Shown here piece by piece: positions 467-25,866 of a stretch of DNA of 33,603 nucleotides. The translations under genes and the position numbers were made by a program. The stretch is from contig MQRL01596018.1 in the NCBI GenBank assembly GCA_001938525.1, positions 1-33,603 on the forward strand, given 5' to 3'. Origin of the DNA: Dugesia japonica. Taxonomy: Eukaryota. The notes under the pieces are model-generated. The model was not told the origin of the DNA. It searched no databases and saw only the letters and a list, made by a program, of their open reading frames with translations. How positions within the stretch are numbered: position 1 is the stretch's first letter; each line of letters opens with the position of its first letter.

Positions 467-3382
467 AATTATTGGAACGATATACATCCCGGATGATGAA
501 ATAACAGTTGAAACATCAATTCTATCAATAAACGAAGAGCGAGATCCGGATATTGAATATTATGATGCACCATGCTGTAATAGCAAAATATTGTTGCGTA
601 TTGTTGTTGTGAATATATTATTAAGGAATTATGATCACATATTCGCCAAGCACGAATATGATCTGGGTATTACTAATGTATTAGAGCACGAAGTTGAGCT
701 AACTACAGATTAATCCATAAAACAGAGACCTTATCCAATTCCAGAGAAATTGGAAGATGGTGTGAATAAACAAATAAAGTTAATTCAAAAATATAAAATC
801 ATTAGTGATAGTAAATCACTGTATCAATCGCCACTTATTGTTGTAGCAAAGAAAGATGGTTGAGTTAGATTGTGTAACGATTTTAGAAAATTTAATGAAA
901 TCACTGTCAAGGATAGTCATCCTTTGCCACCATTAGGTGGATATTCGACAAGTTAAAGAAAGTTTTGTATTATTTCGTCGGAGATGCACAAAAAGGATTT
1001 TATCAAGTTGGATGTGGAAAGGAAACTAAAGGTATGACAGCATTCTCCACTAAATCGGGACATTATGAATATAATGTCATGCTGTTTGGACTCACTGAAG
1101 CACCAGCAACATTTCAAAGACTAATGAATAAAGTTTTGGAAGATGTACCATTTGCGATGGTATACATAGATGATANNNNNNNNNNNNNNNNNNNNNNNNN
1201 NNNNNNNCTCAGCAATTTGGAGGAAGTATTTAAAAGATTAGAAAAGGCTAATATTAAATTAAAACCAACTAAATGCAAATGGGGAGAAGATGAAGTAATT
1301 TATGTTGGTCATGTGATATTTCATAAAGGGATAATCCTGATCCTGCTAATATCACCAAAGTTCAAAACTTCCCAGCACCAAAGAACCCAAAACAAATCAA
1401 AGAATTTTTAGGTATTGCAGGATATTATCGCAAGTTTATTCGAGATTTTTCGGCATTGGCTTTTCCATTAACTCAATTAGAAAAGCAAGGAGTAAAATTT
1501 ATTTGGGGCCCAGAACAACAGGAAGCTTTTGAGGAGCTTAAGAGGCTGTTGACAACTGTACCAGTTTTGAGATATCCCGATTTCGAAAAACAGTTTATAG
1601 TGATGACCGATGCTAGCAATAAAGGCATTGGTGCTTTACTAGAACAGTTAGATGAGAATAAAAACGAATATGCTATTAGCATACGCAAGTAGAGGATTGA
1701 AACCTCACGAGTAAAACTACGCAGTAGTTGAATTGGAAACTTTAACAGTAATATTTGCTATCTATAAGTTTCGGCATAACCTTTGGGGTAGAAAAATTGT
1801 TATATTTACTGATCACAAACCATTACAATGGTTAATGAAACACAAAAACGACTCATCAATATTAATTAGATGGGCCTTTAAACTACAACCATACGATATC
1901 AAGATAATCTACCGAAAGGGTAAAGAGAATTCAAACGCAGATGCATTGTCTCGTGTGTAACAAGATGATGAACCCGGAGATTTAAAAGAAGAGAGACTCG
2001 AAGGAACTATATTCACTATTTTAAAACAGGTTAACGATCAATCAGAAGCAATTCAAGCACAATTAGAGGATGAGGAGATCAACCAGACTAAACTAGTATT
2101 ACAGACTGGAATCATACCAGCTGAATTTTAAAAGTTTTGGTCAAAAAATGAAGGAAAGTTCATAATGGAGGATGAACTTGTCAAATACCAGGAAACTATG
2201 GACAAAGTCGTCATGGTTCCAAAGATGCTTGTAGAAGCAGTAATGTTGCAGTATCACGATGGTCAACTAGGAGGACATATATCTGCAAAGAAAACTATAT
2301 CAAGAATTAGACAGAAATAATTTTGGCCAGGTCTTAGAAAAGATGTAAAAGAATGGTGTCAAACGTGTAAAGTTTGTGCTACTAGGAGAAATACTGGGGT
2401 TTAGCCTCGTGTACCACTAAAACCTATGCCAGTTCCAACCTCGCCAATGGAAATCTTAGCCATGGATGTGTTGGGACCGTTTAAGCAAACAAAAGATGGA
2501 AATAAATTTATTTTGGTATCTTGTGACTACCTAATCAAATGGCCATAAGCATTTCCTATGCCAGATCATAAAGAGGGATACTATGGCAAGGATATTTGTA
2601 GAGCAAATTGTATTTAGGTATGCCGTGCATAAGAAATTATTGACGATAAAGATACAGACTTCATGCGTAACTTATTAAAAGGTATAAATGAATATTTTGG
2701 AATATTAAAGTTGAATACATATCCATATCATCCACAGACTGGTGGATTAGTCTAAAGATTTAACGGAACATTAGTACAAATGTTGGTATTGTATGTCAAC
2801 GCAGATCAAATTGATTGGGATGTTCATATTCCAACTTGCTTGTTTGCATATCGAAATGCAGTGCACTCAGGTACAGGTTATTCACCATTTTATTTAATGT
2901 ACCTACGAAATAGTAATATCCCAATAGATCTTTTTTTCCAAACTCCATTGTCTCAATATCTTAATGAAAAGGATTATTTGTTGGAGTTGAAAGATTGAAT
3001 GCAAGTAGCATGGCCTAAGNNNNNNNNNNNNNNNNNNNNNNNNNNNNNNNNNNNNNNNGAGAATTATGATAAGAAAACCAAACCTCATGAATTAAAGGTT
3101 CAAGACTTGGTTATGTTGGAAGGTCACAACACAAAAAAGGGGTTGTCACCTAAATTGATAAGAAATTTTAAAAGACCTTATGAAATTATCAAAGCAACAG
3201 AAACAAATTTGGTATTAAAATTATGCTCAAATAAAAAGGCAGAATCTATATTAGTTCATGCTAATAGAGGTAAAAAATATTATCCAAATGAAAAAGAAAA
3301 GAAAGAGATGCAAAAACTAGATAAAAGACCAGACCAAACCAAACCAGATTTACAAGGAAATAGATATTCAATTCGAAATAGG
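467..3382 (+). pseudogene. pol: Gypsy pol (RT, RNase H, integrase) with stops and frameshifts
   Basis: RT motifs [38 protein letters not shown]; RNase H TDASNKGIGALL, FTDHKPL, NADALSR; integrase HHCC zinc finger (~2255-2380), YHPQTGGL, and a GPY/F-like RPYEI. Confidence 0.95.
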
Positions 3383-4270
3383 ATGTTGATGAACTCGGTC
3401 ATGTTTATAACTCTACTCAGTTGTCTAACAAGCATAGAAGCCCAAGAGATATTTGAGCCAAAAGCAGTGCCTATGGAGATAATGATACTACGAAGATGGT
3501 ATCACATGTTTTCTATTCAAACAACAGTCAATTCAAAATTTCAATATTACGTAACATTTATTTCCGAAGGAAAAGGAACTAATTATATCATGGGATATAG
3601 GAACAAGGAGATTAATATCACAAATTTAAGAGCTAATCATACCTATTCTATGCAGTGTGGGTATATTGGTATATTGGGAGAATGTACAAACTACAGGATG
3701 GTATCTTACGACTTTACCAATAATCAAAGTTGTAATAACTTATTAAAGCCCATGTCTAATCTTCACGAAAATGCATACAGAGTCGGAGGAAACGTTAATC
3801 GAACTTTGCTACCACACACTTGATGTAAACGTACGCTTGGACCACAAAGCTAGCGTAGGGAGATGGGGCTCCGAACTCAATTATAATATAACAATCAAGT
3901 ATTATCAACAGAAAGAAGGATCAACAACTACCTACTTGGTATTGTCAGATGAAATAAAACCAGTTAAGGTTATTAAGAAACCTGTCTACAGGAAATTAAA
4001 CGCAAAACTCTGGAGTAAAATTAAATGTGTCAAATGAATATTAATTTAGAAAAAGCAGCACTTAAAATGGCCTCAACGATGTGTAATTGTTCCACAGCGA
4101 CACCTTTAAATTTCAAAGAAAATGACAAAATGCAAAAGCGTATTCAGATAATAATAGCATTGCTGATAGCAGCAATAGGCGTAATATCAGTGTAGTTGTG
4201 GGCACAGTATAAGTTAAAGAAACTGCGATTGAGTTTTGTGCCTGAGAATTTATGCGAGATGGACAGCTGA
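3383..4270 (+). pseudogene. Integrase-fused type-I membrane glycoprotein (signal peptide, FN3-like ectodomain, TM, short tail)
   Basis: In frame with IN after RYSIRNR: hydrophobic MLMNSVMFITLLSCLTSIEA; FN3-like YYVTF...INITNLRANHTYSMQC; N-glycosylation sequons NIT, NHT, NQS, NRT, NCS; TM IQIIIALLIAAIGVISV*LW (~4142-4202). The C-terminal half is conserved in copy B. Confidence 0.75.
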
Positions 4271-4353
4271 CTAAGCCGCCCTAAAGTGAAGATTATATGT
4301 ATTATATTTATATTTATCATATCCTTATTTATATTAACTAAAATAAATATTCT

Positions 4354-4380
4354 TATATATATATATATATATATATATAT
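4354..4380. repeat. (TA)n microsatellite
   Basis: Read directly from the sequence. Confidence 0.95.
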
Positions 4381-4441
4381 GCTTAAAAAAGAAAGCAGTT
4401 TTTGCATAAATATTCCCGTTAGTGGAAATATGCTTTTTAAG

Positions 4442-4499
4442 AACTGCCAGTTTTGGCGTATCACTAGATGTGATAAGTTTATTAATTTTTTATTTTTAG
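4442..4499 (+). promoter_or_regulatory. Conserved hairpin(s) plus polypyrimidine/AG 3' splice acceptor in front of the accessory ORF
   Basis: aactgccagttttggcgtatcactagatgtgata...ttttttatttttAG is closely matched by copy B at 19394->19337. Confidence 0.6.
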
Positions 4500-6369
4500 A
4501 TAAAACAGTGGCAAGTTCCAGCAATCCAAACAATCAATATGGAGATCAAAGGAGCAGTACAACTGTTCAAACTATCTTCAAAGAGAAATACATATACCGG
4601 CAAATTGAAAGCACTTTCTTCAAGGAGAAGCATAAATATCAAAATTACGCAATATATAAGACAGAAGATCTCCCCAACAACTACAATTTCTACCAAGCAC
4701 CAAAAGGGACAATGTATATGTCTATCATGTCGGCTAGAAAAATCGCGAATCTATTCGACGTATTTCCGGATATGTAAAAAAGAGATTAAAACGTCTAATA
4801 CGTGGATTCATTGTATCCATAAGCCCTATGCAGTTTATATTGCAGTTACTGAAGATATAATATACTTGGATAAGTGTACTATTCTTGAAATATCTCATGG
4901 GGATGGGAGAGCGAAACGCTTATCCTTTCAAAGTGATAAAAATGGTACTATGATAGTAGTTGAAATACTAAGCATAGTGAAACCTCGCGTTATCTTCTCA
5001 GCTAATGAGCCTTTGTGAACATATAATGTGAATATGAACGATATGAAAATTTTATAGTCATTCGTTCGATTATCGCTAATGCAGCTTCAAGAAGACAAGC
5101 TAACTCGCTGCACATTATTGTACAATCAGAGAAAACTTAGCTCCAGCATTAGTAGCTGTGACAATCTTAAATTTCGATGGGTAATTATTAGTTAATTCAA
5201 TAATCACTCCCAGACAACCAGTTAAACACTATCGGTCTCACGCTCACGGTCTTCAAGAAGAACAAGTACGAGGAAACTGGGACGGAGAAGATGCGAAGAT
5301 CGAAATCAGACGATTTGTCGACGGACGAATCATAATTGGAATTGTCGTCTCCGATCTCTTGGAAGCAATTGGATTTCCTTACCCAAGAGTATTAGGAATC
5401 AGAGATCTGGGAGGAGCAAAATGTTTCGAAAAACTTGGTTTCCAGAAATGCAAGGGAGCAAACAGAATAGCATACCTACAGAAGCAAATACTCCCAGACG
5501 AAAACATAACATCAACTAGTGACTTCCGATCCGAAAAGGATACTCAAGTCATCAGAAAAATTTATCTAAAAGTACGAGATCAATGGGAAGATTATATTAC
5601 GAGTGACAACAAATCTAATACCCTCAAGTCTACTGCGAAGGCTATAAGCCAGAATAAAACAGCGTGGAATTTGATTCCATTATCCCCAAACAGCAACCAT
5701 GAAGACGAATTGGGACCTACACCAAATATTTCACTCCAAGAATCCGAAGTCAAAGAGATAGACATCCACGAGACGGCGGAAGATTTGTAACAACCAGAAT
5801 CAGAAGAAATCACAAAGAATATAGAGAAAAGATACCCAGGTGTTTAAATCACCGGTATAACAGAAGCTTCACCACCAGAAGAAGGTGACTAAGCTCTTCC
5901 TCCCATCAAAAATGAAATAGGAACTGAAGAAACTATGTGTAAAATAAGAGGATTGTCCCCATCCAACGATCGTGAAACGATAAAACTCAATACATTTTTA
6001 GATTTGGACTCCTCACAAGCACTTTACTTCCAGAAGCCTGGAGGAAGTTGGAAAAACCGTATCGAGGTTTATGACGGAAAAAAGGTAAATCGTACTGATA
6101 TGGTAGATAGCAGTCGAAATTCAGGATCATTCATGGTTGGTGAACGAGAGTACATATGGTCATCAGTGATATATATGGACAAACAAACTGGAGAACTTTT
6201 AGTTATATCTTACAACTTTGATGCGAAACGCGTATCCAAGAAACGTCCACGCATAATTTTTAACCCAAAAAAGTTGTCGCACGTTCCACCATATAGGCCG
6301 AAGAAAAAGAAACCTTCACATTCGGGTCCAAGCCCTAGTCAATCTGTTCCGAGTACCAGTAAGAAATAA
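4500..6369 (+). pseudogene. Retroelement accessory ORF (~620 codons) with a REX4/ISG20-like DEDDh exonuclease fold (~5104-5590)
   Basis: One frame runs from 5104 to 6369 with only point stops. VAVTILNFDG*LLVNSIITPRQPVKHYRSHAHGL...FVDGRIIIG...IRDL...SEKDT aligns by eye to the REX4/ISG20 core. The N-terminal part is homologous to copy B 19336->18950. Confidence 0.72.
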
Positions 6370-6391
6370 AAGATCTAAATAGGGGAAGCCA

Positions 6392-6502
6392 TAGCGTTTC
6401 TAGCTACTACCGCTCTACTCTATCCGCAATCCAAGCACAATGATAACTCTAGCGTTTCTAGCTACTCCCATTCTTCATTGTTGCCAATCCAATCCACAAT
6501 TA
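6392..6502. repeat. Imperfect 58-bp tandem duplication in the 3' UTR of copy A
   Basis: tagcgtttctagctact at 6392-6408 and 6450-6466, each followed by caatccaa..cacaat. Confidence 0.85.
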
Positions 6503-6608
6503 GTCCACGTATCAAGCAGAGTCTCAAATCACATATAAAACAGTCAAATATACATATAATAATGAAACTAACATTTTATAGGAATAAAATGCGGGTGCAT
6601 CTTCTTCC

Positions 6609-6618
6609 GAAGGGGGAA
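6609..6618 (+). promoter_or_regulatory. Polypurine tract (PPT)
   Basis: gaagggggaa lies 4 nt before TGTTGGGG, the typical Gypsy 3' end geometry. Confidence 0.6.
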
Positions 6619-6622
6619 CATT

Positions 6623-7363
6623 TGTTGGGGAAAACCAACCTTGACTACACTTACATGCGGCCACAAAATATACAACATTACACATACATGCATGTATTCA
6701 CAAGATATACAGCAAATTAAAGCAACAAAATCACAATCAATCAAACCGAACCAATCCAAGAGTGATCCTATTTTATACATCAGTGATCATATTCAATTTA
6801 GTTAATATTCAATTCAGTTATCATTTTGATTATCCTGATTTTGACAATTAATTATTCTGAATTATTTTGATTTTGACAATTAATTCTTAATTTTCATATA
6901 ATATTGGACAATTAATTATCCTTTCTAACTATGTAAATAAATTTTAATATTTTGTAGTAAAATCCAAATTTTATGTTTTTATCTTGATACTGTAATTTTT
7001 ATGGTTGTCGTAGAATCCAAATTTTATAATGAATCAATATTGTTTATGAATTAATTGAAATCATGGAATATTGTTTAATATATATTAAAGTTGAAATCAT
7101 GGATCATATTTTAATTATATTTTAAAGTTGAAATCACGGAATATTGTTTATCATATTTTAATTATATTTTTAAGTTGAAATCACGGAATATTGTTTATCA
7201 TATTTTAAAGTCTATGGAATTATACAAAAAAACTAGTAAATGTTATTGATAATCATGTAAATTTTATATAATTGCATGAATATTTATGGAAAATTTTTTG
7301 TATATTATGATATAAAAAATAGTATATTGTTATTGAAAAGAGACATAGTTTTCATTCTAAACA
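6623..7363 (+). repeat. Putative 3' LTR of copy A (TGTT...AACA) with internal tandem repeats
   Basis: Starts TGTTGGGG after the PPT. Contains repeated gacaattaatt (6840-6920) and gttgaaatcaYggaatattgttta units (~7055-7220). The end at ctaAACA (7363) is a guess because no partner LTR is in the window. Confidence 0.5.
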
Positions 7364-7532
7364 CCCTCTTAAAAAACTGAAAAAGTGTTTGGATCTTTTG
7401 AGATCCACAACCAAAAGGTTTAAAATATTTAAAAGATAATTTTTTTGTTAGTTATTACTTAATGTTAATTGTGATTCAATTATAATTCTTAAAAAGTAAT
7501 TTCTTAATTTTCAAATAAGAACGACTATATAG

Positions 7533-7558
7533 TATATATATATATATATATATATATA
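7533..7558. repeat. (TA)n microsatellite
   Basis: Read directly from the sequence. Confidence 0.95.
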
Positions 7559-7659
7559 AGGCATATAGAAAATAACGATACTATAAAATTGGGAGTATCA
7601 TAATTTTCTTTTTAAAATCAATTATATAAACTCACGCATTGTTGATTTATTTTGGCAAA

Positions 7660-7895
7660 TTAATCCCCCAAAGTATCTCAACAAAATGAAAGAAAGAATT
7701 TGTAAGATATTGCAAACATAGTTATTTGCTACGCATACTAACAGCAAGTTGGAATAAGGGAACCCAAATCAAATGGAGGTTGTCATGCACTTTTTGGATT
7801 GACAGGCACCAACCTTTTCCCAAAAATAGCGAACCAAGACGTTCTTTCCAATTCTTATTGGATGTAGTTCCCATAAAAGCGTGGATAAATGAATA
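7660..7895 (+). mobile_element. Possible heavily deleted hAT transposase remnant
   Basis: Fragments KYLNKMKERICKIL, LFAT and PILIGCSSHK (resembles the hAT CxxH motif); broken frames. Confidence 0.3.
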
Positions 7896-8640
7896 AGATT
7901 TATAGTAATTTATATTCAATAAGATCACCCTACAGTACCACAATATATGTAACAATAAATTTTTAAATAAGTCATTTTTGTTTTTTTATTTAAAAAATGG
8001 CAGAGCATAAGAGATTTTCAATTCGGGTTCATGTTTTCCTTCAGCAGAACAAAAATTGGAGTAAAAGAATGAAGAAACTCAGGAAAGATCCAAATATTAA
8101 AAGAGCAGATCAGTACAATTGAAGATAAGCATATTATATCAAAGGGTCGAGAACACGTTCTATTGCATAGCAACCGGCTACTCGTTGATATTAAAACACT
8201 CTAATTAAAGGCAGTATTATAACACATATATTTCACTGAAAACAATAAAATTTATAAAGAAAATTAATCGGTATAATCAAAAAATTTCAAAAGTTTATGA
8301 TCCACGAGACTGTAATTATTGGTAGATTAAAAGTTTTAATCTTTTGCCAAAATTCATACTTATTATCAATCAATTTTACATTTAATTTTTTAAAAATTAA
8401 ATGTCAAAAAATATATTACTTTTCAATAGTAAATATTAGATTTTTTGAAATTTGATTTGAAATGTGATTTCTTCGTTTAATAATTTTTATAAAAGTAAAA
8501 TGTTTTTTTAAAACACATTAATAGAAAAATTAAAATACTGTACCATCGTAATTTAACTTTAAATTTATTATATTTTTCTATCTAAAATTTGTTTAAATTT
8601 GTAAAGTAAAAAGAACAGTTTATATTCAAAAATAATTAAT

Positions 8641-8686
8641 GTAAGTGTTCATTTTTATAAAGTATAGTCATTTTTTTAAAAAATAG
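8641..8686 (+). other. 46-nt 5'-UTR intron of RPS21
   Basis: GTAAGT...aaatAG ends 1 nt before the ATG; length matches the PRP4K mini-introns. Confidence 0.8.
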
Positions 8687-8687
8687 C

Positions 8688-8954
8688 ATGCAAAACGACC
8701 TTGGAGATTTTGTGGATTCATACATCCCAAGAAAATGCAGCGCATCCAACAGAATTATTGGTGCCAAAGATCATGCTTCAATTCAAATTATTTTAGCTGA
8801 ATTGGATGCTGAAAAGGGTACAGTTACCGGTAAGAAAGCTGTTTATGACATCTCTGGTAATGTACGAAAAATGGGTGAATCCGATGATTGTATCAACAGA
8901 TTAGCTTATAAAGATAAAATGTTAACTGATACCTTTTTCAGGAAACAACAATAA
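8688..8954 (+). CDS. RPS21: 40S ribosomal protein S21 (eS21)
   Basis: [31 protein letters not shown]...[14 protein letters not shown]; intact 88 aa; AATAAA at ~8950 and 8961. Confidence 0.98.
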
Positions 8955-9271
8955 ATTAAAAATAAAAGTTGGAATACTTTAGTTTTTATTTTAGTTTTAT
9001 TATTTTATTTCGATTGGTTATAATAAATTCGACTGTCGTATTAAAATTTTATTCAAAAAAAAACATTGATCCTTGGTTAAATTATTATCGATTAATTTAA
9101 ATTACTTTAGCTTTGCTTATATTTTGTCTAAAAGCTAAATATTGATATTTATAGAAATATGCGTATTAATTTTAGAACTAAATTTTCATTAAATTTACAC
9201 TCGTTATTTTGATGAGCAATGTGTGATATAATAATTAATCATAACATTTCAGTTTGTTAAATTCACTAAAT

Positions 9272-9710
9272 TTTTTAAACTCCGTCAACGGATCCGTTAT
9301 CGCTTGAGACAAGTTTACTACGTCATAGCAATTTAAATGGGTATTAAAGTTATCAAACTCAAAAACCCATGTTATAATAATTTGAGTACAAACATTTTAT
9401 GTAATTACACCAAACAAATGTGTCTAAATACATTTTAAAACGAACTTCTTTAACAAGTAACGAGATTCCAACAAGTGGGGAAAAATTTTTTTTTATTAAC
9501 AACCATGGAAGAAAACCCCAAATAAGATAAAAATTAATTAATTTTAAGGAAAAAATAGAATGGATCACGTGACTCGTAGTTTGGTTTGTGCATATTTTCT
9601 TTCCTTAGTTATTGGCGATATATTCACTAAATCAAGTAATTTTTGAAGTGTGTTTTCAAAAAAGAAATAACCAAATTTGTGAAATCGGATCCGTTGACGG
9701 AGTTTGAAAA
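9272..9710. mobile_element. MITE / non-autonomous DNA transposon (~430 bp)
   Basis: Perfect 20-bp TIR aaactccgtcaacggatccg (9277-9296) / cggatccgttgacggagttt (9686-9705); non-coding interior. Confidence 0.85.
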
Positions 9711-12375: not shown

Positions 12376-12384
12376 TGCACCAGA

Positions 12385-13757: not shown

Positions 13758-13859
13758 TGTGTATTTAGTTGAGAAAGTTTTCTTACCTTTTTAAGTAGTA
13801 GAATTTATCAGGCTTTTTAAGCGGCATAATTTTTCATGTGTATTTAGTTGGGAATTTAT

Positions 13860-14275
13860 TTGGTAAGGTCGAATGAGGTCGATTTTTGATTGGTTCAGGT
13901 AAATTTGGTTACTTATTTCCTCGGGATTGGTAATTTTAGATGGTTTTTGTCCAAATTTTCTTCAGTGAGGTCGAAAAAGGTCAAATTTTGTTTGGTTCAG
14001 GTGAATTTAGTCGAATATTTCCTCGGGAATGGTTAATTTGGTTCATTTTTGGACGATTTGGTCAATTATTTCCTCATGGTTGGTCAGTTTGGGCAAACTT
14101 GGTCGGTTTTAGGTAATTTTTGAACGATTTGATTAGGAATTTACTCAGTGAGGTCAAAAAAGGTGGATTTTTGATTGATCCCGGGGAATTTGGTTACTTA
14201 TTTCCTCGGGATTGGTCAGTTTAGATAATTTTTGGGCGTTTTGGTGAATTATTTCCTTGGGTTGGTCAGTTTAGG
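13860..14275. repeat. Degenerate minisatellite: ~10-11-bp subunits, 51-bp units, 183-bp higher-order repeat
   Basis: tatttcct at 13914, 14016, 14067, 14199, 14250; cagtgaggtc at 13963 and 14146. Confidence 0.85.
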
Positions 14276-14582
14276 ATGAAGTTTTACGGAAAATAATGGA
14301 AAAAGTCGAATTTGTTAAAATTTTCAAGTTTTTTATAATTATTTTAACTTTTGTGGTAAATTGGTGAAATTCGGTCATTTTTGTTTAAATTTTCAGATTT
14401 TTAAAATTTTTAAATCAAATTTTTATGGGAATCCGAGAGAACATCTGAAATTTCGAAAATTTTTCAAAATTTTTTTTCTCGAGATTTTTAAATCCACCGC
14501 TGCAGAATTCGATGGAGATTATTATTCACAAATAAAAATTTTTCGAAAAAATTATTTCTCATCTTTACGTGAAATATTCATG

Positions 14583-14948
14583 TCTATTAGATAAAGAATG
14601 TTTTTCTGATTCCAAATATATAAACCTAAAAACACCAAAGTTTATCCGGAATGAAATATTTAGGGTTTTGCGGTGAAAATTCTCAAAGTTGGAATATCGG
14701 TGCTCAATTTTCTCTTAGTGCATAATTCGTATGGTTTCAAATTTGATATTATTTTACTCAGGAGGAAATAAGTGACTGTACAAAGTTAAAATATCGTCTC
14801 GGGAAAAATTCTTCCTAACGAAGATATTTAGCTGCCCTCTCGGATTTGATAACTTTTTTCGAAAATTGAAAANGTATCTCAAAATTCGCCAAAAAGATAT
14901 CTATTCGATAAAGAATCTTTCACTGATTCCAAATATGTAAACATAAAA
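14583..14948. repeat. Dispersed ~50-bp direct repeat, probably internal to a non-autonomous TE
   Basis: tctatt.gataaagaat.ttt..ctgattccaaatat.taaac.taaaa at 14583 and 14900. Confidence 0.75.
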
Positions 14949-15699
14949 TCATCAAAGCTTATAAATAAAAAGCTATATAGAAAAAACAAGTACTTCATTT
15001 CGGGAGTCCGAGAGGAAATTACGAATTTAGGAAAGAGCAGCTCGAATTTGAAAATCAGAGTATTTATTCGATAGAGAATTTTATTTTTAGTAAGAAAAAC
15101 ATGATTACAAATCCTCAAACTTTATAGATAAAAAGTTATAAAGAAAAAATCAAGTGTAAAATAAGTCGACAATCATAGGAATCGAACCACCACTGATGAA
15201 CAGTAAAAGAATGCTATTAAAAACTTATATTTAAATATAACAATGATACAGAAGAGTCAATAAATAATATCATGTTAATAATATCATTGGTCCAGCATAG
15301 GACTATAAATCTGTCAGATTTTCATCGAAAAGGGAATTGTTCCTTTCGGATTTTTCTTTGAATATTGCTCTCGTTTGTATTGCTTATTTCATCTGCATAT
15401 TTTTACTTTAATTTGCCAGTAATTTCATAAAGGCTTTTATTAGTGTCCTCATTCATTTGCAGCCTGATTTCGTTTACTCTTACTGCTCCTCCTGAATTAC
15501 CATCTGCAATACAAAATAGCATTTTTACCGTAGTAGAATATTAACTGAGAGTCTTTATTCAAATCAAATTTTCTGGCAATAAAATCAAGCTTATTATCCT
15601 TTTTCCATTTCAATTAATTTAATTATATAATATTTACAGATTTTTTTAAAATTTAAAACAGTTAAATTGATTTATCTCATTTTATATAAAATTTGTTTA

Positions 15700-18600
15700 T
15701 TTATATTTTTACATTTGTTAGAGTGTTTAACTAAGTTTCCTAGTCGAGTGATATATTCAAATCCGAGTAGAATGTTTGATGTTTGACAGAGCACATTGTT
15801 TCAAGATGGACTGGATTTTATCACTAGAAAGAACTATTTAAGAAAGAGCTGAATAAGTAGATTTATGAACACTTCCAAGAGAGCCAACAATTAAAGTTCT
15901 AAGTTCGACTTTGTAATCAGGTTTGGCAGTTCTGATTTTGTCTCTGAGACCAGTGTATTTTTCAATCTCAACAAAATTTCCATTTGAGTCTATATGGCAT
16001 TTAATGTCCAATAAATGAATTGATTTTGCCTCATCATTTGTAATTATTAAATCTACTCTTTGCTTGGAATCAGGGACAAATGGACATGTGTGATCACTCA
16101 CGACAATTCTTGATGGTGATTTAAGAGAGGAAACAAGTTTTTCAAGACAAGCATTGTTTCGTTCTGTTGTCAGTGATTTTGTTACTCTGCAATTTTGTAA
16201 CACGTGCGCCATCGTTTCTTCACATTCGTGGCATCGACGACANNNNNNNNNNNNNNNNNNNNNNNNNNNNNNNNNNNNNNNNNNNNNNNNNNAGCTTTAT
16301 TAATGAAGTTCCATGCAAATATTCCAAGGTCGCTTCGGAAGATTGATTTATTGATGCCAGGAGTTAATCTAACTGCATCAGCAATTAAATTGCTCTTCTT
16401 GCTATTATGCCATTTCAGTGCATANNNNNNNNNNNNNNNNNNNNNNNNNNNNNNNNNNNNNNNNNNNNNNNNNNNNNNNNNNNNNNNNNNNNNNNNNNNN
16501 NNNATATAGTTGTTATGCGCAATGCAACATCTTTATTAAAGATTTCAAATTTTATTTTGATATTATGAGTTTTATTGAAGAAATGTAACGGATTTTTAGG
16601 TCTTATCCATTGAGATTTTCTAGAGTTGAATTTATTTAAGATATCACCAGCGTTTAAAAATCCAAATGCTGATTCGAGGGATAGAATAGTCGTTTTCACA
16701 GATGGATTTGTGACAAAACACAAATGATCTCTATTGATTTTTTCTGTTGCTTTACAGTTTGTTGTTAACATTCGAAACGCTTGGACAATACTTTGTGTAT
16801 GATATTCATCCAATAGATCAACACAGTTTGCTCCACCATCTTCTGTTGAACAATAAAAGCAAGCGATTTCTGAATATCTTGGTAGGTTCATCATTTTCCG
16901 TAATTGATCCCTTAATTTACTAGTCATATTATAATTGTAATGAGGGTTACAATTAGGTGCAGTTAAAGCTTTTGTTTTAATTTCCCTAGTGTGGAACGGA
17001 AATATCAATATAGAATGAAGAATGATTTTAGTTTTTGCCAACCTAATAAATCAGAGTTTGTCAACTTTTCAGCATCACATGCAACAGTTGATAAAGTTTG
17101 ATAAGATGTTTGACCCGTAGACTCTCCAATTGGAAAACCAAAGTATTGATAAAATTCATTCGTTGTAAGCTTTTTTATTTTCCTTTTAAAAATTGGATTT
17201 CATCAATGATATTCATTCTTGATAGTTGGAGATAAGCTGAAATCTGGCTGAAAGTCCAGTCCGATTTTCATTGCAATAAATGTTGCTTGGTTGATTAACT
17301 TTTGTAGATCTTCAACGTTGTTTACTATCAGTGAAATATCATCAGCATATGCCAAGACTTGTATTCCAGAATCACCAAGCATAAATCTAGGGACATTTGG
17401 TGTGTATCTTATAGCTTATAATACTGGATTTATTGCTATGGCAAAGAGTGCCATTGAGAGTGTCATCAAACCCTGTTTGACACCTTTTTTGATGGGAATA
17501 CTTTGAGTTAATATGTTACCGCAGCTAAATATTGAGCTAGATTTTGTGTAAAGGCTTCTTATAATATTGATGAAGGCTTCATCTATTCCAACACAACGTA
17601 ACAATGACCACATGTATTCATGAGAAATGTTTCCGAAAGCGTCTTTTATATACAGTCAAGCTATAGCAATTGTACATGATTTATTGTATTTTTAATATTC
17701 TAGAGCCGCTCTTAAGATTGAGTTGTGTTCAACACATAATTCATGTTCAGAGCCACCTTTTTGAAATTGATGAAGAAGATTATTTTCTTTGATCCAAAAG
17801 TTCAGTCGTCTAGTAAGAATTGCTGCAAATATTTTGTATATCATTGACAATAGAGCAATTTGCCACCAAAATGAAATCCTATTATACAAATTCTTCTTAA
17901 CAGACTTTGGAATTAGAATAATTTTGAATGATTTCCAAGCATTTGGTATGATATCGTTAGATATAATTTCATTGTACAGNTGGTAAAGTAATTTTCCTTT
18001 AGGATCGAGATATTTAATGTCTTTAAGTGGTATTGTCCAGTCCTGAAGCGGTATTTTCTACTTTTTTCCATTCATTAAGCATATCGCAAGGATGAATTTG
18101 ATCAAGTGTTAATGGAGATAAAGATCTTCTGAAATATCTTTCGTTAAGATTTCACTTGAATTTATCTGGTTCATCATGATGAAAGTATTTCTCAATATCG
18201 TCTATTGTTGGTTTCGTATTTGTTGAATCTTTATCTGAAAGAAGGGAGTAGACTGTTTTATTCATGTTCTTATTAAAATCTGATATAAGTTTATATTTAT
18301 CAATATTTAATTTGAGTTTTGCTTTACCAAGGAAAGGTTTGTTAGCTATTTGAGGTTCATTGGACTTTAAGTATTGATTTTTATTATCTCAGTAATTGAG
18401 TCAGGATCCAGATTTTCGATCTCGACAAGTATTTTGTTAGCATTTGTTATGCGATTTTCTTTACTAAGCCTTACTGTCTGTATTTGAAGCTTTGAGCTTT
18501 CAAATATTTCAACTTGATTAGTTTCGTCACTTGGAAGACATAGCCCATCAATTATTGTACCCATTTCTTTGATATTTAGATTGCTAAGTGAACGGTCAAA

Positions 18601-18936
18601 TGCAAATTACTTAATAAAACAACAAATCAGAACTTTTGAGAACAGATCGGAACCTTGCACATCATATGGACAGTTGTTGAATACAGAAAAGTAATTCTCA
18701 CGACAAGCGATTTCATTAATTTTCAGAAGTAAATTGTTACTAATTTTCACGTGACTCTTATTTTCAATAAGAGTCATCGGATTTAGTAAGTAGTGCTCAG
18801 ACATTTCATAATCGATAATCAATAGCAGACAATGAGGTTTTGGTGGACAAAAGATTGCAAAAATCATTTTTTCATTACAAAAGTTATCGAAATTTAAATG
18901 ATCAAGCATATGTTCAGTGCAACCATCTAAAATATG
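15700..18936 (-). mobile_element. NeSL/R2-superfamily non-LTR retrotransposon (Ulp1-like protease, RT, CCHC, REL endonuclease); 5'-truncated and decayed
   Basis: Ulp1-like PHCLLLIID...LLNPM...VQGSD (18870-18610); RT ASGLD, IALLSMIYKIF, FQKG, KKGVKQG, YADD (17349-17338); CRRCHECEETMAHVLQNC; REL TERNN, RVDLI, LDIKC, KYTGL, IVGSLG. Confidence 0.9.
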
Positions 18937-18946
18937 TATATATATA

Positions 18947-19336
18947 AATATGTTGGATAATTGCAGAGGGGCATGTTTCTCTAGGAACACCGGGATCGCT
19001 GCTTCTAATAGGAAAATTATGAAGGGTCTATTGATTAAATAGATCCATAGATGAAACGTTTTGTGTTCCTTCTTCATATATGGGAAGACATCAAGTATGT
19101 TTGCCATTTCTCGGCAATGAAGGGTGTATACATATATAGTCCTCTTTGGGGCATTCGAAAATTTGAAATTATTTGGAGTTTAGAGTAGTTATTGTAATAC
19201 TTGATCTCCGAAAAGAAGTTGGCTTCTATTTGTATATAAACATATTTGTCTTTTTCTATAACCTGGGCATACGTATCCTCCCTGGATTGTCTTCCTCTTC
19301 ATTGATAATTGATGAGAAGATTATTCTGATGCATAT
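18947..19336 (-). pseudogene. Copy B accessory ORF N-terminus, truncated at the NeSL junction
   Basis: MANILDVFPYMKKEHKTFHLWIYLINRPF aligns to copy A IANLFDVFPDM/KEIKTSNTWIHCIHKPY; starts after a conserved AG at 19338-19337. Confidence 0.8.
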
Positions 19337-19513
19337 CTAAGAATAAAATAATTAACGGTGTATCACATATCGTTATATGCCAATCTAGGCAGTTTATATC
19401 ATGCATTAATCTATTTACAAGATTATTTATGCTATTTATTCTCAATATAAATAATAATATGATAAATATAAGTATACTACTTTTACAAGTGATTTAAGAT
19501 AGGGGCGGCTTAG

Positions 19514-20014
19514 TCATGCTTTCAACTCATACACATTTTCGGGGATGAAGCTGAGTCTCAACGTTTTCAATTTATTTTGCGTCCGTAACCATACAGTAAT
19601 TACGCATATGAAGCCAATTGCTGCTATCAGCAATGCTATAATTATTTGTATACGCTTTTGCATTTTGTCATTTAATTTGGTTTTCTGAGGAGTCATGACA
19701 GAAAAATGACACTGAGCTTAGGCCATTTTAAGTGCTGCCTTTTTCACGCTAAGGTTTGTTTGACAGGATTTAATTATGTTCCAAAATTCTGCGTTTAATC
19801 TTCTTGAAATAGGTTTCTTACTAGTTGGAGTTGTTAAACTAACCGTAAATTTGCTCGGCGTTGATAGTTTGATAACTGATTTCGGATCTAATTTTATTTC
19901 TTTTGAAAACACCAAATAAGAGGCTGTCGATCTCTCTTGTGGCCGATAATACAAAATATTTATATCGGATATTGATTCGTTACACTTTATCCCGACATTG
20001 ACTTTATGATGCAA
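19514..20014 (-). pseudogene. Copy B C-terminal half of the integrase-fused membrane protein
   Basis: KPISRRLNAEFW..KAALKMA..NDKMQKRIQIIIALLIAAIGFICVITVW..LRLSFIPEN matches copy A 3840-4270; the signal peptide and FN3 part are deleted. Confidence 0.85.
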
Positions 20015-20039
20015 ATGAATTGAATGCTTTATTTTCCCA

Positions 20040-23000
20040 TAGTGAAATTTAATTTCCGTTTTAATTCTTCATATGGTCCTTTATAATTTCCGATTAATTT
20101 TGGTGATAATCCTTTGGTATTATTATGCTCTTTGAGCATTACCAAGTCTCGCACTTTAAACTCATGCGGTTTAGTCTTTTTATCATAAACATCCTTCATT
20201 TCTTCTTGAGAATATTTGATACTCAGATTAGCTTTTGCCAAAGCTATCTGCATAATAAAGCTATTTGCATTCTACCTTTTAGTTAGAGAAATAGTTACTT
20301 TCATTGAGGTATTGAGATAGTGGTGTTTGAAATACTAATTCTACGGGCATGTTGCTATGTCTTAAATACATCAAATAGAATAGTGAATATCTAGTGCTTG
20401 AGTGTACAACGTTGCGATACTCAAATAAGCACGTAGAAATATGAATATCCCAGTCAGTTTGCTCGGAATTAACATATGATGATAGCATTTAGCTAATGTT
20501 CCATTGAATCGTTCAACTAACCCATCTGTCTGCGGATGATATTGAGATGTGTTTAATTTCAGAATTCCAAAGTATTAATTTATTCTTTTTAAGAAGTTAC
20601 TCAAAATTTTTGCCTCTGACAGTTAATAACTTCTTAAGCACTCCATATCGGAACACTATTTGTTCAAAAAATATTCTAGCCATTGTATTGGTTTTATGGT
20701 CTGGCATTGGAAAAGCTTCCGTCTATTTAATGAGATAATTGTATGCTACTAATATAAATTTATTTTCGTCATTTGTTGGTTTAAATGTTTCCGAACACAT
20801 CCATCGCAAGGATTTCCATCGCTGATGTTGGAACCAACATTGGTTTTTGTTCCCGTATTTCATTTAGTAGCACATACTTTACACGTTTGACACCATTGCT
20901 TCACATCTTGGTGAATTTTCGGCCAAAAATACTTTTGTCTGTTTTCTTTGTTGAGAGAACCGTCATGCTAGTTGACCGTCATGATATTTTAAAGCATCTC
21001 TAAGTACTTTCGGAGCCATTACAACATTATCAGTTGTTTTCTGGTATTTAACTAATCCATCTTCCAATAAAAATTTTCCTTGGTTCTTTGATCAAAACTT
21101 TTCTAATTCAACAGATACGATTCCAGTTTCTAAAACTTGTTTTATTTGATTGATTTCGTTGTCTTCAAGTTGAGCCTTTATTACTCCTGCTTGATTATTT
21201 ACCATTTTAAGAACTGCGAAGATTTTTCCCTCCAATCTTCCTTCTTTAATGTCATCAGGCTCATCATTCTGGTCTATAATAGTGCATTTGTATTTGAGTT
21301 CTCTTTCCCTTTTCGGTAAATTATTTCTATATCATAATTCAACTGGTACCAGCTGTAATTTCAAAACCCATTTAATTAGTCTCGATGAATCGTTTTTATG
21401 TTTCATTAACCATTTTAACAGTTTGTGATCAGTATAAATTATTATCTTTCTACCCCATAGGTAATGTCTAAATTTTTCAATCGCAAATATTAAGGCTAGA
21501 GTTTCTAAATCTATTACTGCATAATTATTTTCATTCATTGCCATTTTCATCTAACTAACCTAGCACCGTTTAAATACCTTTATTGCTGTCGTCTGTCATG
21601 ACCATAAATTGCTTTTCAAAGTTAGGATATTTGAGTATCGGTACTTATGTTAACAAATTCTTAAGCGTTTCAAATGCTTTTTCTTATTCTTTTCCCCATA
21701 AAAATTTAACTCCCAATTTCTCTAATTGAGTTAGAAGAAATGCTAATGCTGAAAAATCTCTGATGAATTTCCGATAATATCCAGCTTATCCCAAGAACTC
21801 TTTGATTTGTTTAGGGTTATTAGGTTGTGGAATTTTTGTACTTTGATGACATTTGTTGGATTTGTTCTTATCTCTTTCCAAGATAAGTAACCAACATAAA
21901 AGTTTGACCAAAGAAAGTTTGACCAACATAAGTAACTTTCTCCTCAGACCACTTGGATTTGGTAGGCTTCAATTTGATGTTAGCTTACTCTAATCTTGAA
22001 AACTCCTCTTCTAAATTCCCGAGATGCTCATTAAATGCTTCTGAGAAAACTAATAATCATTGCTACACACCATTGCAAATGACATGTCTTCTAGTATTTT
22101 ATTCATTGTTCTCTAAAATGTTGCCTGGGCTCCTGTAAGTTCGAATGGCATAAAATTTTACTCATAATGACCACTATTAGTTGAAATTGCGGCCATTTGT
22201 TTGGCTTCTTTTGAACAACCAATTTGATAAAACTTTTTTTGCATCTCCGACAAAATATTATAGTGTTTTTCTTAATTTATCAGAAATCCATTCCAACAAT
22301 GGTAATGGATGACTAGCTTTGACGGTTACTTCGTTCAGTTTACGATAGTCATTACAAAGTCGCACTGATCCATCTTTCTTAGCCACTACTATTAGTGTAG
22401 ATGGAAATGTTGATTTGTTATCACTAATTATTTTATACTTTAACATCAACTTAATTTGCTTTTCTACATTGGCCTCCAATTTTTTCAGGTATTGGATAAG
22501 GCCTTAATTTGATCGGTTTATTTATAGTGAGCACAATCTCATGCGCCAAAATATTTGTAATTCCGAGATTATATTCATATTTATCGAAAATATGATCAAA
22601 TTTGCTTATTAACATATTTAAGAGAATATTTTCCTTCTTGGATAAGATTGTACCATTGCTACACTGTGCGTCATAGTATTCAATATTCGAATCTCATTGC
22701 TCTGTGGTAGATAACGTTGTAGATTTCTCAGTTATTTCATCATCTGTTAAGTATATAACTACCATATTTTTATCTGGAAACAACCTCACTGATTTGATAT
22801 TCAGATTTCATATTTTAACAGCCGATTTACTCGCTTTAACCTGACTGACACTACAGATTCTGGGTTTGCAATACCTTTCCATTAATAATGAATTTGATTC
22901 AAACAGTACCTCTCGTTTATGTTTGAGAGAAGTATTGATAAGGCATACGGTTTCTACTATTGGTGGTATCATGATCTGCTGATCAATATATGTCAAATGT

Positions 23001-23380
23001 TCATAGTAATCCTTTTTTCGTTTCCTGGTTAGTTTTAGTGATTGTCCTGTAGCACTATCAAATACTACATCTTAAAGTTTCTTTAACATGTCCATATCTC
23101 GTATACATTCTACTGGACATCTCCTCATGACTTTTATTCCATATTTTATATCCTGATCACATATTTTTATATTACTATCTAGATATTATATTATATCTAA
23201 TCTTCCACCATTTGCTGCAGTGATGTCTGGTTGTTCTTTAACTACAAATTATGTCTCTGTTTTATTTAGTAGATCTACTATAGTAGTAGATCTACTATAG
23301 TTCTGTCTGATCATAAATTTATCATGGCATAAACAACATGTCTATTAATTCTTATTTTTATCGATGGTTTATGAGCATAA
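20040..23380 (-). pseudogene. pol: Copy B pol: aspartic protease, RT, RNase H, integrase
   Basis: Decayed protease YAMINL*SDRTIV (equivalent to D-S/T-G), ITAANGG; KKDGSVRLCNDYRKLN; YTDHK; HPQTDGLVERFNGT; KGPYE. Confidence 0.93.
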
Positions 23381-24154
23381 TCTGCATTTATCATGAAGGT
23401 TGACATATATGTTGTAATCCCTAACATATTTTATCTCTGTACATCAGAATTTGGTTCTGTCTCATTGTTCATAGCATTTCTCTCTTGTAACTGCTGGCTT
23501 TGATTTATAAAATCACATCTCACCTTCTCTGGTTTTGGATTTGGTAAGTTTCTTATTCTATTTTGTTCTTGTTCCCAATTTTGAAATTCTTTTGCCAAAT
23601 CCTCTTGAGTATAATTTATTGGCAATTGTTGACCAGTTTGTCTTTCAAATAGAATTCTTACTAAAATTCTTGATGCTGGTTTAGTTTCTACATATTCTAG
23701 AATTTTCGCCATATCATAATTATCTATGTACTCTCTTAGTTCATCCAGCTAACATGTTGGATATCTTGGTGGCGGTAATGTTGAACTCAAAGTTGGTGCA
23801 GTTNCAAATAATAAAGAATTTTACATGGTACTAATTGGAGAATTGTTAGGTCCACGACCTTCCCATTTCTTTTGAATTCTACGTTGTCTATTATATTTGA
23901 TATTCTTCTTTGTAATTCTATCCTTTCTGGCTTTACTCCGTTTCTTAGGAAGCCCATCTTTATCAATTCGACTATCCTAATTTGGATCCAAATTATAACT
24001 GATATCGCTGTTTTGACTTTTATAGTCATCATAATTATCACTGCCTTCGTTGATTTCATCTGATTGCAACCTTACNNNNNNNNNNNNNNNNNNNNNNNNN
24101 NNNNNNNNNNNNNNNNNNNNNNNNNNNNNNNNNNNNNNNNNNNNNNNNNNNNNN

Positions 24155-25866
24155 AAATTTGCTAAGAATGGGAACAAATCGATAATTAATTGCCAAGTAC
24201 ATCCACCTATCTTGAATATACTATAAGCGAATAATAACTGTGTAAAAATTAGCATCAATTCCTGCTAATTCAGAAACAAAGACTTCAAATGCGCTAGATT
24301 TTTACCAGATTTTTTGTGCTACATTCTTAGCAGCTTCTTTATAATGTTCTGGTACGAATATTAAATTGTAATTGGGTTGTATTTCATTTGATAATACACT
24401 GTTCGGCTTATATTTGAGATACCCCGTTCTCTTATATGTGGTAACCAAATCATTTTTCTAGCTTGCTCTATATATTCAGGAGTGGATACTTCAGTTTTTG
24501 CATAGTCATTAAGAGATTTAATTCCATTTTTGTCAGTTAATTTAGCAATATCTAGTGTTTGCACTGGTTTAGATGATGGTTTACGATTAGGTAACGAAAT
24601 TCAATGCTCATTCACCTTATATAAATGTGATATAGTAGGATTGCATACTGCTTCCTGAGGTTTAAACTTTTCTTTTAGTAACAAATGAGTTACTGGACTC
24701 ATAAATATCAATTTATTCTCATAGATTACTGATAGTTCTCCTGTGCATTGATTGAAATTAGAGAGTGGCACTTCTACAGGAGCACATTGATAACTACAAA
24801 TGGCTTAGCCCATAATTCGTCCGAAAACACCTTTTTCCAACAACATTGGAGTGACTAAATCGGAATTAACTACCGACATTGCTAATCGATTCTTAATTAT
24901 TTCTCGATTAAGCTTACAATCCTTCAGAATAACTTCCTCATACATATCTTGTAATTGTGACTGTAGATTAAGATACATGTAATCCACTTTGTTGTAAATA
25001 TAATTTGCTAGTTTTATATCTTGAGCACTTAATTGCTTGGCGGTTAGAATGCTCTTTTTTTTGCTAAATTTAGGTATTTTTAGTTGATCTCATACTCTCT
25101 ACGAGCACACTTTAATTTCGGCTCCTTTCTAACAAATATTATTGCATCGTTAGGATCGGTGGATACTTATACCACAGGAGTATCTTCCTGCTCGATTTCA
25201 CCAGTCTTTAACTGCTTCAATTTTTGTTTTAAACCAGCTGTTTAGTCATTGACTGTATTTTTTGATTATAGAAAAATGTAGGTTTAGTTACCTCAGTTTC
25301 AATCTATTCTCATTTACATTAGCAAATGATAATCCTTTTAACAACGATAACTCGCTGAAATCTTGTCTTTCCTCAAAATTAAGAGTTGCAAATCCGGTTT
25401 TACAACTGGAGAACTTTGAATTACGTTGAGGATTTCCCATCATCCTTCCTAATTCAACCGCAAATACACCTTTATACTTGAGTAATTCCACTGAATAATC
25501 CTCAATATCTACTACCCAATTTACAGTAACACCTTGTCATGTTTTGGTTTTTCGGACACAATCTCGATCAGGGTATAAGTTTTCCAGTACGACTATGTAC
25601 GTCACAATAGTATTCGAACACTGCTTTTTGCACTCGGCATTCTCTCACTTTAGTTTTGTAATATTCTGTTACTTGGTAAATATAGTACTTTACCGGTTCC
25701 TCTTTTTGCAGTTTAGTAGGGTACGCTTCACTACTTTCTATTGCATCAAATAGTGAGTATATAATCCTGCAGGACTAGAGTTGTTGCCATCATAAACAAT
25801 TTACCAGTTTTTTGCCTCAATATTCCCATCATCATTAGCATCATTAATATTGTAAGAATGATTCAT
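24155..25866 (-). pseudogene. env: Chuvirus-glycoprotein / herpes gB-like class III fusion envelope protein
   Basis: Signal peptide IILTILMMLMMMG; YD.....YSL; VRECRVQKAVFEYYCDVHS; YLNLQSQLQDMYEEVILKDCKLNREIIKNRL; G.AICSYQCAPVEV..CTGELSV..FMSPVTHLL..CNP; C-terminal hydrophobic LIFTQLLFAYSIFKIGGCTWQLIIDLFPFL. The Cys and motif order matches chuviral-type G proteins. Confidence 0.82.

Follow-up and report, generated by a model that had tools for sequence, protein, structure and literature searches.

Two dead Ty3/Gypsy-type copies in a Dugesia japonica contig, very probably from a family with a captured fusion glycoprotein upstream of protease

Gypsy-type elements that carry their envelope gene ahead of pol are already known: Chary and Hayashi (eLife 2026, PMC13524379) described GAG-ENV-POL elements with a gB/chuvirus-like envelope in Nematoda, Bryozoa and Platyhelminthes as well as ENV-GAG-POL elements in mites, and they cite Sacco et al. 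2022 (J Gen Virol 103:1739) for endogenous retroviruses of nematodes. We analysed a stretch of 33,603 nt from Dugesia japonica (assembly GCA_001938525.1, contig MQRL01596018.1; hereafter the window), which holds two relics, copy A on the forward and copy B on the reverse strand. They resemble the 'ancient errantiviruses' of that study in their Gypsy-type pol, in an envelope, putatively of the class III/gB-like kind and akin to glycoproteins of negative-strand RNA viruses, located upstream of the protease (PR), and in an ectodomain flanked by hydrophobic segments; unlike those elements, the copies in the window are dead and truncated, and no gag or LTR is seen. The nematode retroviruses are reported to have gag, env, pro and pol in one continuous ORF. 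The original prediction had presented the layout in the window as a candidate new architecture; env-before-pol with a gB/chuvirus-like envelope had, however, been published, and a clade with such a layout is thus already described (PMC13524379). The same paper makes no mention of a membrane-anchored domain after integrase (IN) or of a single giant ORF, and the post-integrase membrane domain treated below may be undescribed.

Other systems share single traits with the window. Anakin, a group of BEL/Pao elements of mosquitoes whose glycoprotein derives from a chuvirus (Dezordi et al. 2020, PMC7642597), is likewise an LTR retroelement with a captured Jingchuvirales-type glycoprotein. Unlike its BEL/Pao pol, the pol domains in the window and their nearest relatives are Gypsy-type. 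The Anakin envelope is said to follow pol, whereas that in the window precedes PR. Insect errantiviruses (e.g. gypsy, ZAM and Idefix) are also Metaviridae with an envelope gene, but they are ordered gag-pol-env with an F-type (baculovirus/paramyxovirus-like) envelope, whereas the fusogen of copy B lies upstream of PR; the post-integrase ORF downstream of pol yielded neither a Pfam match nor a homologue. Insect errantiviruses have no GPY/F motif (PMC12440569), whereas a GPY-type motif is present in the IN C-terminus of copy B. Jingchuvirales glycoprotein EVEs beside Gypsy fragments occur in Hymenoptera and Coleoptera (Dezordi et al. 2023, PMC10084718), and gypsy elements with a chuvirus-like glycoprotein in Coleoptera, Hymenoptera, Polyneoptera and Hexanauplia (PMC13524379). 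These arthropod cases, like the window, associate a chuvirus-type glycoprotein with Gypsy pol, but the 2023 study had fragments only and capture was unproven, whereas our results provide independent support for glycoprotein and Gypsy pol as one unit. The glycoproteins of exogenous Chuviridae and Nyamiviridae belong to the same family (PF24664) by profile and transitive similarity; in contrast to these, the glycoprotein of the window is DNA-encoded within a retroelement polyprotein and decayed.

We consider it very probable that the two copies in the window were inserted independently, are long dead and belong to one Ty3/Gypsy-type (Metaviridae-like) family, which captured a PF24664 fusion glycoprotein of negative-strand RNA virus type and carries it upstream of PR (Table 1). 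The window thereby adds two dead copies to the known class of fusogen-capturing invertebrate retroelements. The span 467-25866 that had been claimed for the architecture also takes in some 12 kb of unrelated sequence lying between them.

Table 1. Features of the two relics in the window (P0140 and P0150 are relatives described in the text).
Feature	Positions	Strand	Basis or remark
Copy A, Ty3/Gypsy-type relic	~480-4900, perhaps to 6369	+	One of two colinear relics
Copy A pol relic	480..3295	+	PR-RT spacer to integrase; Pfam and tblastn
Copy A RT	~600-1400	+	Pfam RVT_1
Copy A RNase H	~1450-1950	+	Pfam RT_RNaseH_2, RT_RNaseH
Copy A integrase	~2150-3300	+	Pfam Integrase_H2C2
Copy A post-integrase membrane protein gene	3383..4270	+	Continues in the frame of the IN C-terminus
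Copy A downstream stretch common with B	4271..4900	+	A/B alignment, tblastx
A-only ORF-rich stretch ('accessory ORF')	4901..6369	+	Candidate part of the element
Copy B, Ty3/Gypsy-type relic	~25866-18950	-	Colinear with copy A
Copy B fusion glycoprotein relic, Monjiviricetes/Jingchuvirales-type, with TM anchor	24160..25866	-	PF24664; tblastn
Copy B linker, glycoprotein anchor to PR	23246..24159	-	Holds N run 24076-24154
Copy B pol relic (PR remnant, RT, RNase H, IN)	20059..23245	-	Pfam RT_RNaseH; tblastn P0150/P0140; colinear with A
Copy B post-integrase membrane protein remnant	19514..20058	-	Distal ectodomain, TM anchor, tail, stop
Copy B downstream stretch common with A	18950..19513	-	A homology stops at ~18950

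The assignment to Ty3/Gypsy follows from the Pfam domains RVT_1, RT_RNaseH_2, RT_RNaseH and Integrase_H2C2, found in this order, and the best 150 RT relatives among 1.84 billion representatives are Gypsy-type pol proteins. Copy A is 5'-truncated, with glycoprotein, PR and gag all missing; its pol, which matches P0150 and P0140 by tblastn (outer bounds 618-3295), is interrupted by 10-13 in-frame stops and shifts frame 2-3 times. For glycoprotein and pol of copy B together we counted ~36 in-frame stops (non-redundant chain) and at least five frame changes. The N runs at 1176-1207 and 3020-3058 are each crossed in one frame by single tblastn alignments of relatives, and the spacing of A and B agrees across them, so the sequence runs on past both without a break or a loss of frame. 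Two further N runs, at 16243-16292 and 16425-16503, lie outside both copies.

Matching the original prediction, the two copies are colinear but diverged, with 67% DNA identity over 2.5 kb (blastn) and further homology blocks as far as ~4900 in A and ~18950 in B. Both are dead, carrying tens of stops, several frameshifts and truncations. The many stops and few frameshifts also raised the option of a variant genetic code, which we rejected: the relatives are read by the standard code, and the stops align with many different residue types, so they reflect decay. A and B diverged while pol was under purifying selection, the differences between their pol ORFs lying mainly at third codon positions (p 2e-4 to 4e-6), and both decayed afterwards; divergence under selection implies that one genome holds several lineages of the family.

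As had been predicted, a 5' glycoprotein is found in copy B alone. Pfam detects two colinear pieces of PF24664 (Monjiviricetes_fusion) in the region before PR (E 6e-6 and 4e-5; 25.0 and 22.3 bits, each under the gathering score of 27), and in tblastn the same region matches the glycoprotein parts of relatives with 152-244 bits (outer bounds 24160-25759). It aligns to residues 405-983 of P0150, whose own PF24664 match reaches 320 bits, and also to the glycoprotein parts of P0140 and P0105; it is interrupted by 12-15 in-frame stops and changes frame once or twice. The literature describes envelopes of this type as class III, gB-like and chuvirus/nyamivirus-like, and we take the class III assignment, which for copy B would hold by sequence similarity, from PMC13524379. 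Nothing gag-like was found upstream of the glycoprotein in copy B.

P0105, P0140 and P0150 are the only ones among the best 150 RT relatives that also match the pre-PR region of copy B. All three encode PF24664 (E 1e-77 to 3e-95) followed by RVP, RVT_1 and RT_RNaseH in one predicted protein, so that an envelope gene upstream of PR and pol on the same strand is found in copy B and in each of them. P0140 and P0150 continue to integrase, while the sequence of P0105 breaks off after RNase H; P0150 is a single uninterrupted ORF of 2627 aa on a 9-kb contig (gene table). Hydrophobic segments lie on both sides of the glycoprotein domain in P0150 and P0140, and P0150 has one CCHC knuckle upstream of it. 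Over the whole of pol the copies in the window score highest against P0123, P0150 and P0140 (1081-1137 bits, against at most 880 for all others). P0105, P0140 and P0123 come from metagenome assemblies.

Integrase is followed in both copies by a membrane-anchored protein, a further part of the original prediction that held, and conservation between A and B covers its TM anchor, tail and stop codon. In copy A the protein begins with a signal-like hydrophobic stretch, continues with an ectodomain that bears Cys residues and sequons, and ends in a TM anchor and a short tail; its gene is broken by frame changes (at least two) and an in-frame stop. In copy B the gene contains at least one in-frame stop and, compared with A, has lost ~0.6 kb in one deletion that took the signal-like start and the proximal ectodomain. 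Twenty residues identical in A and B span the anchor, and the A/B differences in the anchor/tail part show a codon-position bias (p=0.008); the proximal part of the ORF, tested likewise, showed none. A strong hydrophobic segment after IN is present in all three of the closest relatives with post-IN sequence (P0123, P0150 and P0140), compared with 1 of 47 other Gypsy-type matches (Fisher p ~2e-4). The post-IN tails of these three have no significant sequence similarity to each other or to the pieces in the window, and the likeness is therefore one of topology, not of demonstrated homology. Searches of Pfam, PDB sequences and the database with the post-IN ORF and ectodomain gave no homologue, and AlphaFold2, run without an alignment on the longest intact piece, gave an unusable model (pLDDT 33); with neither a homologue nor a usable fold, the 'attachment-like' role proposed for this second protein finds no backing.

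We tentatively propose, as a possibility that we would ourselves rate below even, that the clade has, after IN, a further membrane-anchored luminal domain that evolves fast and forms the C-terminal end of a giant polytopic polyprotein, the glycoprotein and this small domain lying outside and the enzymes inside. If true, the envelope would have a second component and the polyprotein would be threaded through the membrane in flavivirus-like fashion, a logic undescribed for LTR retroelements; a clade-specific post-integrase membrane segment of that kind would bear on element assembly. On the main reading, intact members of the family would produce a single long polyprotein. An internal hydrophobic signal would direct the ectodomain of the glycoprotein to the ER lumen, and the glycoprotein TM anchor would keep PR-RT-RH-IN cytosolic. 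A second hydrophobic pair after IN, predicted in at least one relative, would place a small Cys/sequon-bearing domain in the lumen, the element's own protease would separate the parts, and the class III fusogen would give particles entry to new cells. The copies in this window are capable of none of these steps.

The same segment might instead be a variable C-terminal tail of Pol, the stretch after its stop a 3' UTR, PPT or LTR, and the A-only ORFs an unrelated repeat or pseudogene; we regard this account as conceivable, if rather doubtful. The segment is indeed in frame with IN in copy A and in the relatives, the tails are unlike in sequence, G+C is higher at 5-6 kb, and homology between A and B stops ~0.6 kb past the stop, as it would at an LTR. 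Directly after the stop and outside the ORF lies a 14-nt block that is identical in A and B, with an AT-rich conserved stretch next to it. However, the rest of the window contains no LTR to match, nothing outside pol is better conserved than anchor and tail, and the A/B differences at 4540-4780 favour one codon position (p=0.001), so that this part is possibly the start of a further ORF.

The original prediction went further and took the family to resemble a complex invertebrate retrovirus of a previously unknown kind, in which a fusogen precedes pol, a separate attachment-like protein follows IN and an accessory gene is spliced. Its order of glycoprotein-PR-RT-RH-IN-TM protein is genuine, the sequence downstream of the TM protein has some coding-like signal, and copy A has a long decayed ORF at ~5185-6369. 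Within the A-only stretch of Table 1 we find ~400 codons in one frame with three in-frame stops, and pieces in other frames. This stretch nevertheless has no counterpart in copy B, elsewhere in the window or in relatives; the accessory pieces, searched exon by exon (Pfam; PDB sequences for two pieces of copy A; the database for one piece), gave no homologue, and a PDB sequence search with the downstream ORF of copy B (18607-19107) was empty. Splicing is predicted by no tool and the intron is common to no relative, which leaves the spliced accessory gene unsupported. As receptor binding is likewise unsupported for the post-IN protein, and env-before-pol with this envelope type is published, we judge the complex-retrovirus account improbable. 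Nor were the PPT and 'LTR start' assigned to copy A confirmed, as no LTR pair or repeat was found in the window: self-comparison at several sensitivities revealed no direct repeat flanking either copy, no PBS, PPT or target-site duplication could be demonstrated for either, and Rfam and tRNA scans gave no host or PBS clue and no tRNA-related feature. Since both copies are truncated, missing LTRs, PBS and PPT here say nothing about the family.

The contiguity of glycoprotein and PR in copy B is drawn from the relatives, because glycoprotein homology ends at the edge of the N run at 24076-24154 and homology to relatives returns only ~0.9 kb further on, the linker itself having no detectable similarity to them; its length varies among relatives, from 145 aa in P0150 to 426 aa in P0140. 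That the glycoprotein is an EVE or part of a neighbouring element beside a Gypsy fragment, or was scaffolded across the N run, is very improbable: Jingchuvirales glycoprotein EVEs are often Gypsy-flanked without clear proof of capture (PMC10084718), and N run and linker would suit such an artefact, but three independent relatives have glycoprotein and pol in the same order in one predicted protein (in one case an uninterrupted ORF), P0140 and P0150 are also among the closest pol relatives, and the gap between glycoprotein and PR is too small for an LTR plus gag. Our results thus support the order glycoprotein-PR-RT-RH-IN-membrane protein as a true property of the family instead of a chance composite; on this point, too, the original prediction stands, with the closest relatives repeating PF24664-PR-RT-RH-IN.

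Outside the two copies, a LINE-like element had been suspected by eye at ~15.8-17.9 kb on the reverse strand, for which Pfam gave no confirmation. The window also contains an eS21 gene, animal-like by PDB comparison, and a kinase exon whose best match has 94% identity.

Upstream of the protease (PR) remnant of copy B, the minus-strand one of two decayed Ty3/Gypsy-type relics of one family in the window, we found two colinear matches to the fusion glycoprotein PF24664 (Monjiviricetes_fusion; E 6e-6 and 4e-5, profile positions 317-374 and 393-439 of 653), each slightly below the Pfam gathering score; in pol, copy B matches RT_RNaseH. The plus-strand copy A shows the Pfam order RVT_1, RT_RNaseH_2/RT_RNaseH and Integrase_H2C2; it is cut at its 5' end inside the spacer between PR and reverse transcriptase (RT) and lacks everything 5' of it, including the glycoprotein part. 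In a search of 1.84 billion representative proteins with the RT piece of A, the best 150 matches were all Gypsy-type pol, and among these only three predicted proteins (P0105, P0140 and P0150) also match the pre-PR region of B (local tblastn, 152-244 bits). According to Pfam, each of the three carries PF24664 (E 1e-77 to 3e-95), with RVP, RVT_1 and RT_RNaseH behind it in the same predicted protein; integrase (IN) comes next in P0140 and P0150, P0105 being truncated. In whole-pol scores of the window copies, the predicted pol proteins P0123, P0150 and P0140 rank at the top (1081-1137 bits; every other match ≤880), which makes the glycoprotein-bearing proteins the nearest kin. P0150 is a single uninterrupted ORF of 2627 aa; its contig, 9 kb long, was assigned to a bacterial MAG by mis-binning. 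P0105, P0140 and P0123 stem from metagenome assemblies. The glycoprotein and pol of B might have been brought together by chance, by a neighbouring EVE or by a scaffolding artefact; however, both are joined in the same order within single predicted proteins of relatives that are also the nearest pol kin, and these readings are therefore unlikely. The env gene that the original prediction had placed before pol in this family is thus borne out, both by the PF24664 pieces in B and by the single-protein order in P0105, P0140 and P0150.

The N run at 24076-24154 in B lies just past the membrane anchor of the glycoprotein; the homology of the relatives ends at the edge of this run and returns ~0.9 kb further on, and continuity and frame between glycoprotein and PR across it cannot be shown from the window alone. 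The runs at 1176-1207 and 3020-3058 fall within RT and IN of A. Each is crossed in one frame by single tblastn alignments of intact relatives, and the spacing in A and B agrees around both, so that their flanks in A are continuous and in frame. Two further runs (16243-16292 and 16425-16503) are located outside both copies. Intact members of the family would produce one long polyprotein, in which an internal signal would send the ectodomain of the glycoprotein to the ER lumen and the anchor would keep the enzymes cytosolic; some members may use a further pair of hydrophobic segments to present a small luminal domain. The protease would then cut the parts of the polyprotein from each other, and entry would be mediated by the class III fusogen.

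Self-comparison of the window, whose DNA is AT-rich (~30% G+C) and animal-like, revealed a single long inverted similarity, with A running on the plus strand from ~480 and B on the minus strand from ~22756 downwards. The copies are 67% identical over 2.5 kb, with more colinear blocks reaching to ~4900 in A and 18950 in B, and are separated by 12 kb of DNA unrelated to either, within which the eS21 ribosomal protein ORF (see table) is located. In the pol ORFs, A and B differ mostly at third codon positions (p 2e-4 to 4e-6), indicating that much of their 33% divergence arose under selection; they are two lineages of one family and represent separate insertions, not a local duplication. Both copies are dead. 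Non-redundant alignment chains to relatives contain 10-13 in-frame stops and 2-3 frame changes over ~890 codons for the pol of A, and ~36 in-frame stops and at least five frame changes over ~1485 codons for the glycoprotein and pol of B, the glycoprotein accounting for 12-15 of these stops and 1-2 of the frame changes. A variant genetic code was ruled out as the source of the stops, since they align with many different residues, as expected from decay. Neither gag nor an LTR is present in copy B.

The C-terminal frame of IN in copy A continues into a short hydrophobic signal-like segment, followed by a stretch with Cys and N-glycosylation sequons. Further on, A and B have the same stop codon, preceded in both by a membrane anchor, in which 20 consecutive residues are identical, and a short basic tail; differences between the copies show codon-position bias in anchor and tail (p=0.008) and none in the more proximal shared part. 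This post-integrase (post-IN) gene is broken by at least two frame changes and one stop in A, and by one ~0.6 kb deletion and at least one stop in B. No homologue of its product was found by Pfam, among PDB sequences or in a search of 5.8 billion proteins, and a single-sequence structure model of one piece was unusable (pLDDT 33). Of 50 Gypsy-type matches that extend 200 residues or more past IN, only four contain a strong hydrophobic segment in this region, and P0123, P0150 and P0140, the closest relatives, account for three of these. In P0150, IN is followed by a weaker hydrophobic segment, a stretch of 259 residues (6 Cys, 4 sequons) and a strong anchor. Hence the topology, not the sequence, of the post-IN region does recur in the closest relatives; the tails of the relatives share no significant sequence similarity with each other or with the window protein, leaving homology of the domain unproven. 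Of the attachment-like second glycoprotein proposed after IN, the membrane-anchored ORF is thus present in both copies, and the role of an 'attachment protein' is a guess. Three aspartic-protease-like stretches occur in P0140, two between glycoprotein and RT and one after integrase, and P0115, another Gypsy-type relative, contains a protease-like domain after integrase and then ankyrin repeats; the post-IN region is accordingly highly variable among these relatives.

Similarity between A and B persists for ~0.6 kb past the post-IN stop, and the conserved elements at its beginning (see table) form a candidate cis-acting signal. Further on, the A/B differences at 4540-4780 are biased by codon position, in frame with an ORF of A (p=0.001), and past ~4900 one frame in copy A alone extends over ~400 codons, interrupted by three stops, where G+C is higher. 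A spliced accessory gene had been predicted here. Its pieces lack Pfam matches; no homologue was found for the one piece run against the 5.8-billion-protein database, nor for the three (two from A, one from B) compared with PDB sequences, and nothing similar to the A-only stretch was found in B or the relatives. No intron was predicted by any tool or found common to relatives, and the gene, whose pieces were searched one by one, is unsupported; the region may instead comprise a 3' UTR or LTR plus an unrelated decayed gene. The proposed polypurine tract and LTR start of A fare no better: a purine-rich run is present near 6380, but no sequence similar to a repeated LTR could be detected.

The env-before-pol arrangement was also predicted to be novel. 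In the elements of Sacco et al. 2022, env is reportedly nyami/chuvirus-like and part of a continuous gag-env-pro-pol ORF. Env-carrying Gypsy elements have been reported across animals (Chary and Hayashi, eLife 2026, PMC13524379), with the ORF order GAG-ENV-POL and a gB-type env in Nematoda, Bryozoa and Platyhelminthes, and the order ENV-GAG-POL in oribatid mites. According to the same paper, mosquito BEL/Pao elements carry a chuvirus-like, structurally gB-like glycoprotein that also adjoins gypsy POL in several arthropod groups, and some gB-type ectodomains have two flanking TM segments; where it cites Sacco et al. 2022, it calls env and pol of nematode elements 'flipped'. Anakin was described by Dezordi et al. 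(PMC7642597), and Jingchuvirales glycoprotein EVEs flanked by Gypsy fragments, with capture unproven, by Dezordi et al. 2023 (PMC10084718). Given the published GAG-ENV-POL elements with gB/chuvirus-like env (PMC13524379), the architecture is of an already known kind. The original observation is confirmed in part, and its interpretation is supported in part, for gene order and not for novelty. In the literature on such env-carrying elements we found no description of a membrane-anchored domain after integrase.

Features located in the window
Feature	Positions	Strand	Basis and remarks
14-nt identical block directly 3' of the post-IN stop, then well-conserved AT-rich stretch, copy A	4268-4345	+	A/B comparison
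Same, copy B	19440-19516	-	A/B comparison
eS21 ribosomal protein ORF	8688-8954	+	Complete, intronless, 88 aa; Pfam Ribosomal_S21e, E 1e-34
Protein kinase, two exons (host gene)	27947-28842	-	Pfam Pkinase; N run between exons; upstream of B

The eS21 ORF represents the gene of the host or else a processed copy of it. Among PDB chains it matches animal ribosomes best (95-99 bits), with yeasts at ~86 and the 88-aa chain 9bh5, which we take to be from C. elegans, at 88.5. The database protein closest to the kinase exons is 94% identical and comes from a Logan assembly; the 3' part of this gene would be expected immediately 5' of copy B. Directly past the end of B's likeness to A, the minus strand at 15838-17900 contains several ORFs of 65-208 aa and two N runs; two pieces, with no Pfam match, are reminiscent by eye of RT motifs of non-LTR elements. 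Local direct repeats occur at 13842-14275 and 14580-14962 (three ~108-nt copies of 73-81% identity and a 66-nt pair of 85% identity), and at the end of the window is a tandem array (33311-33552) of at least five copies of a 40-41-nt unit, up to 98% identical, with an N run inside.
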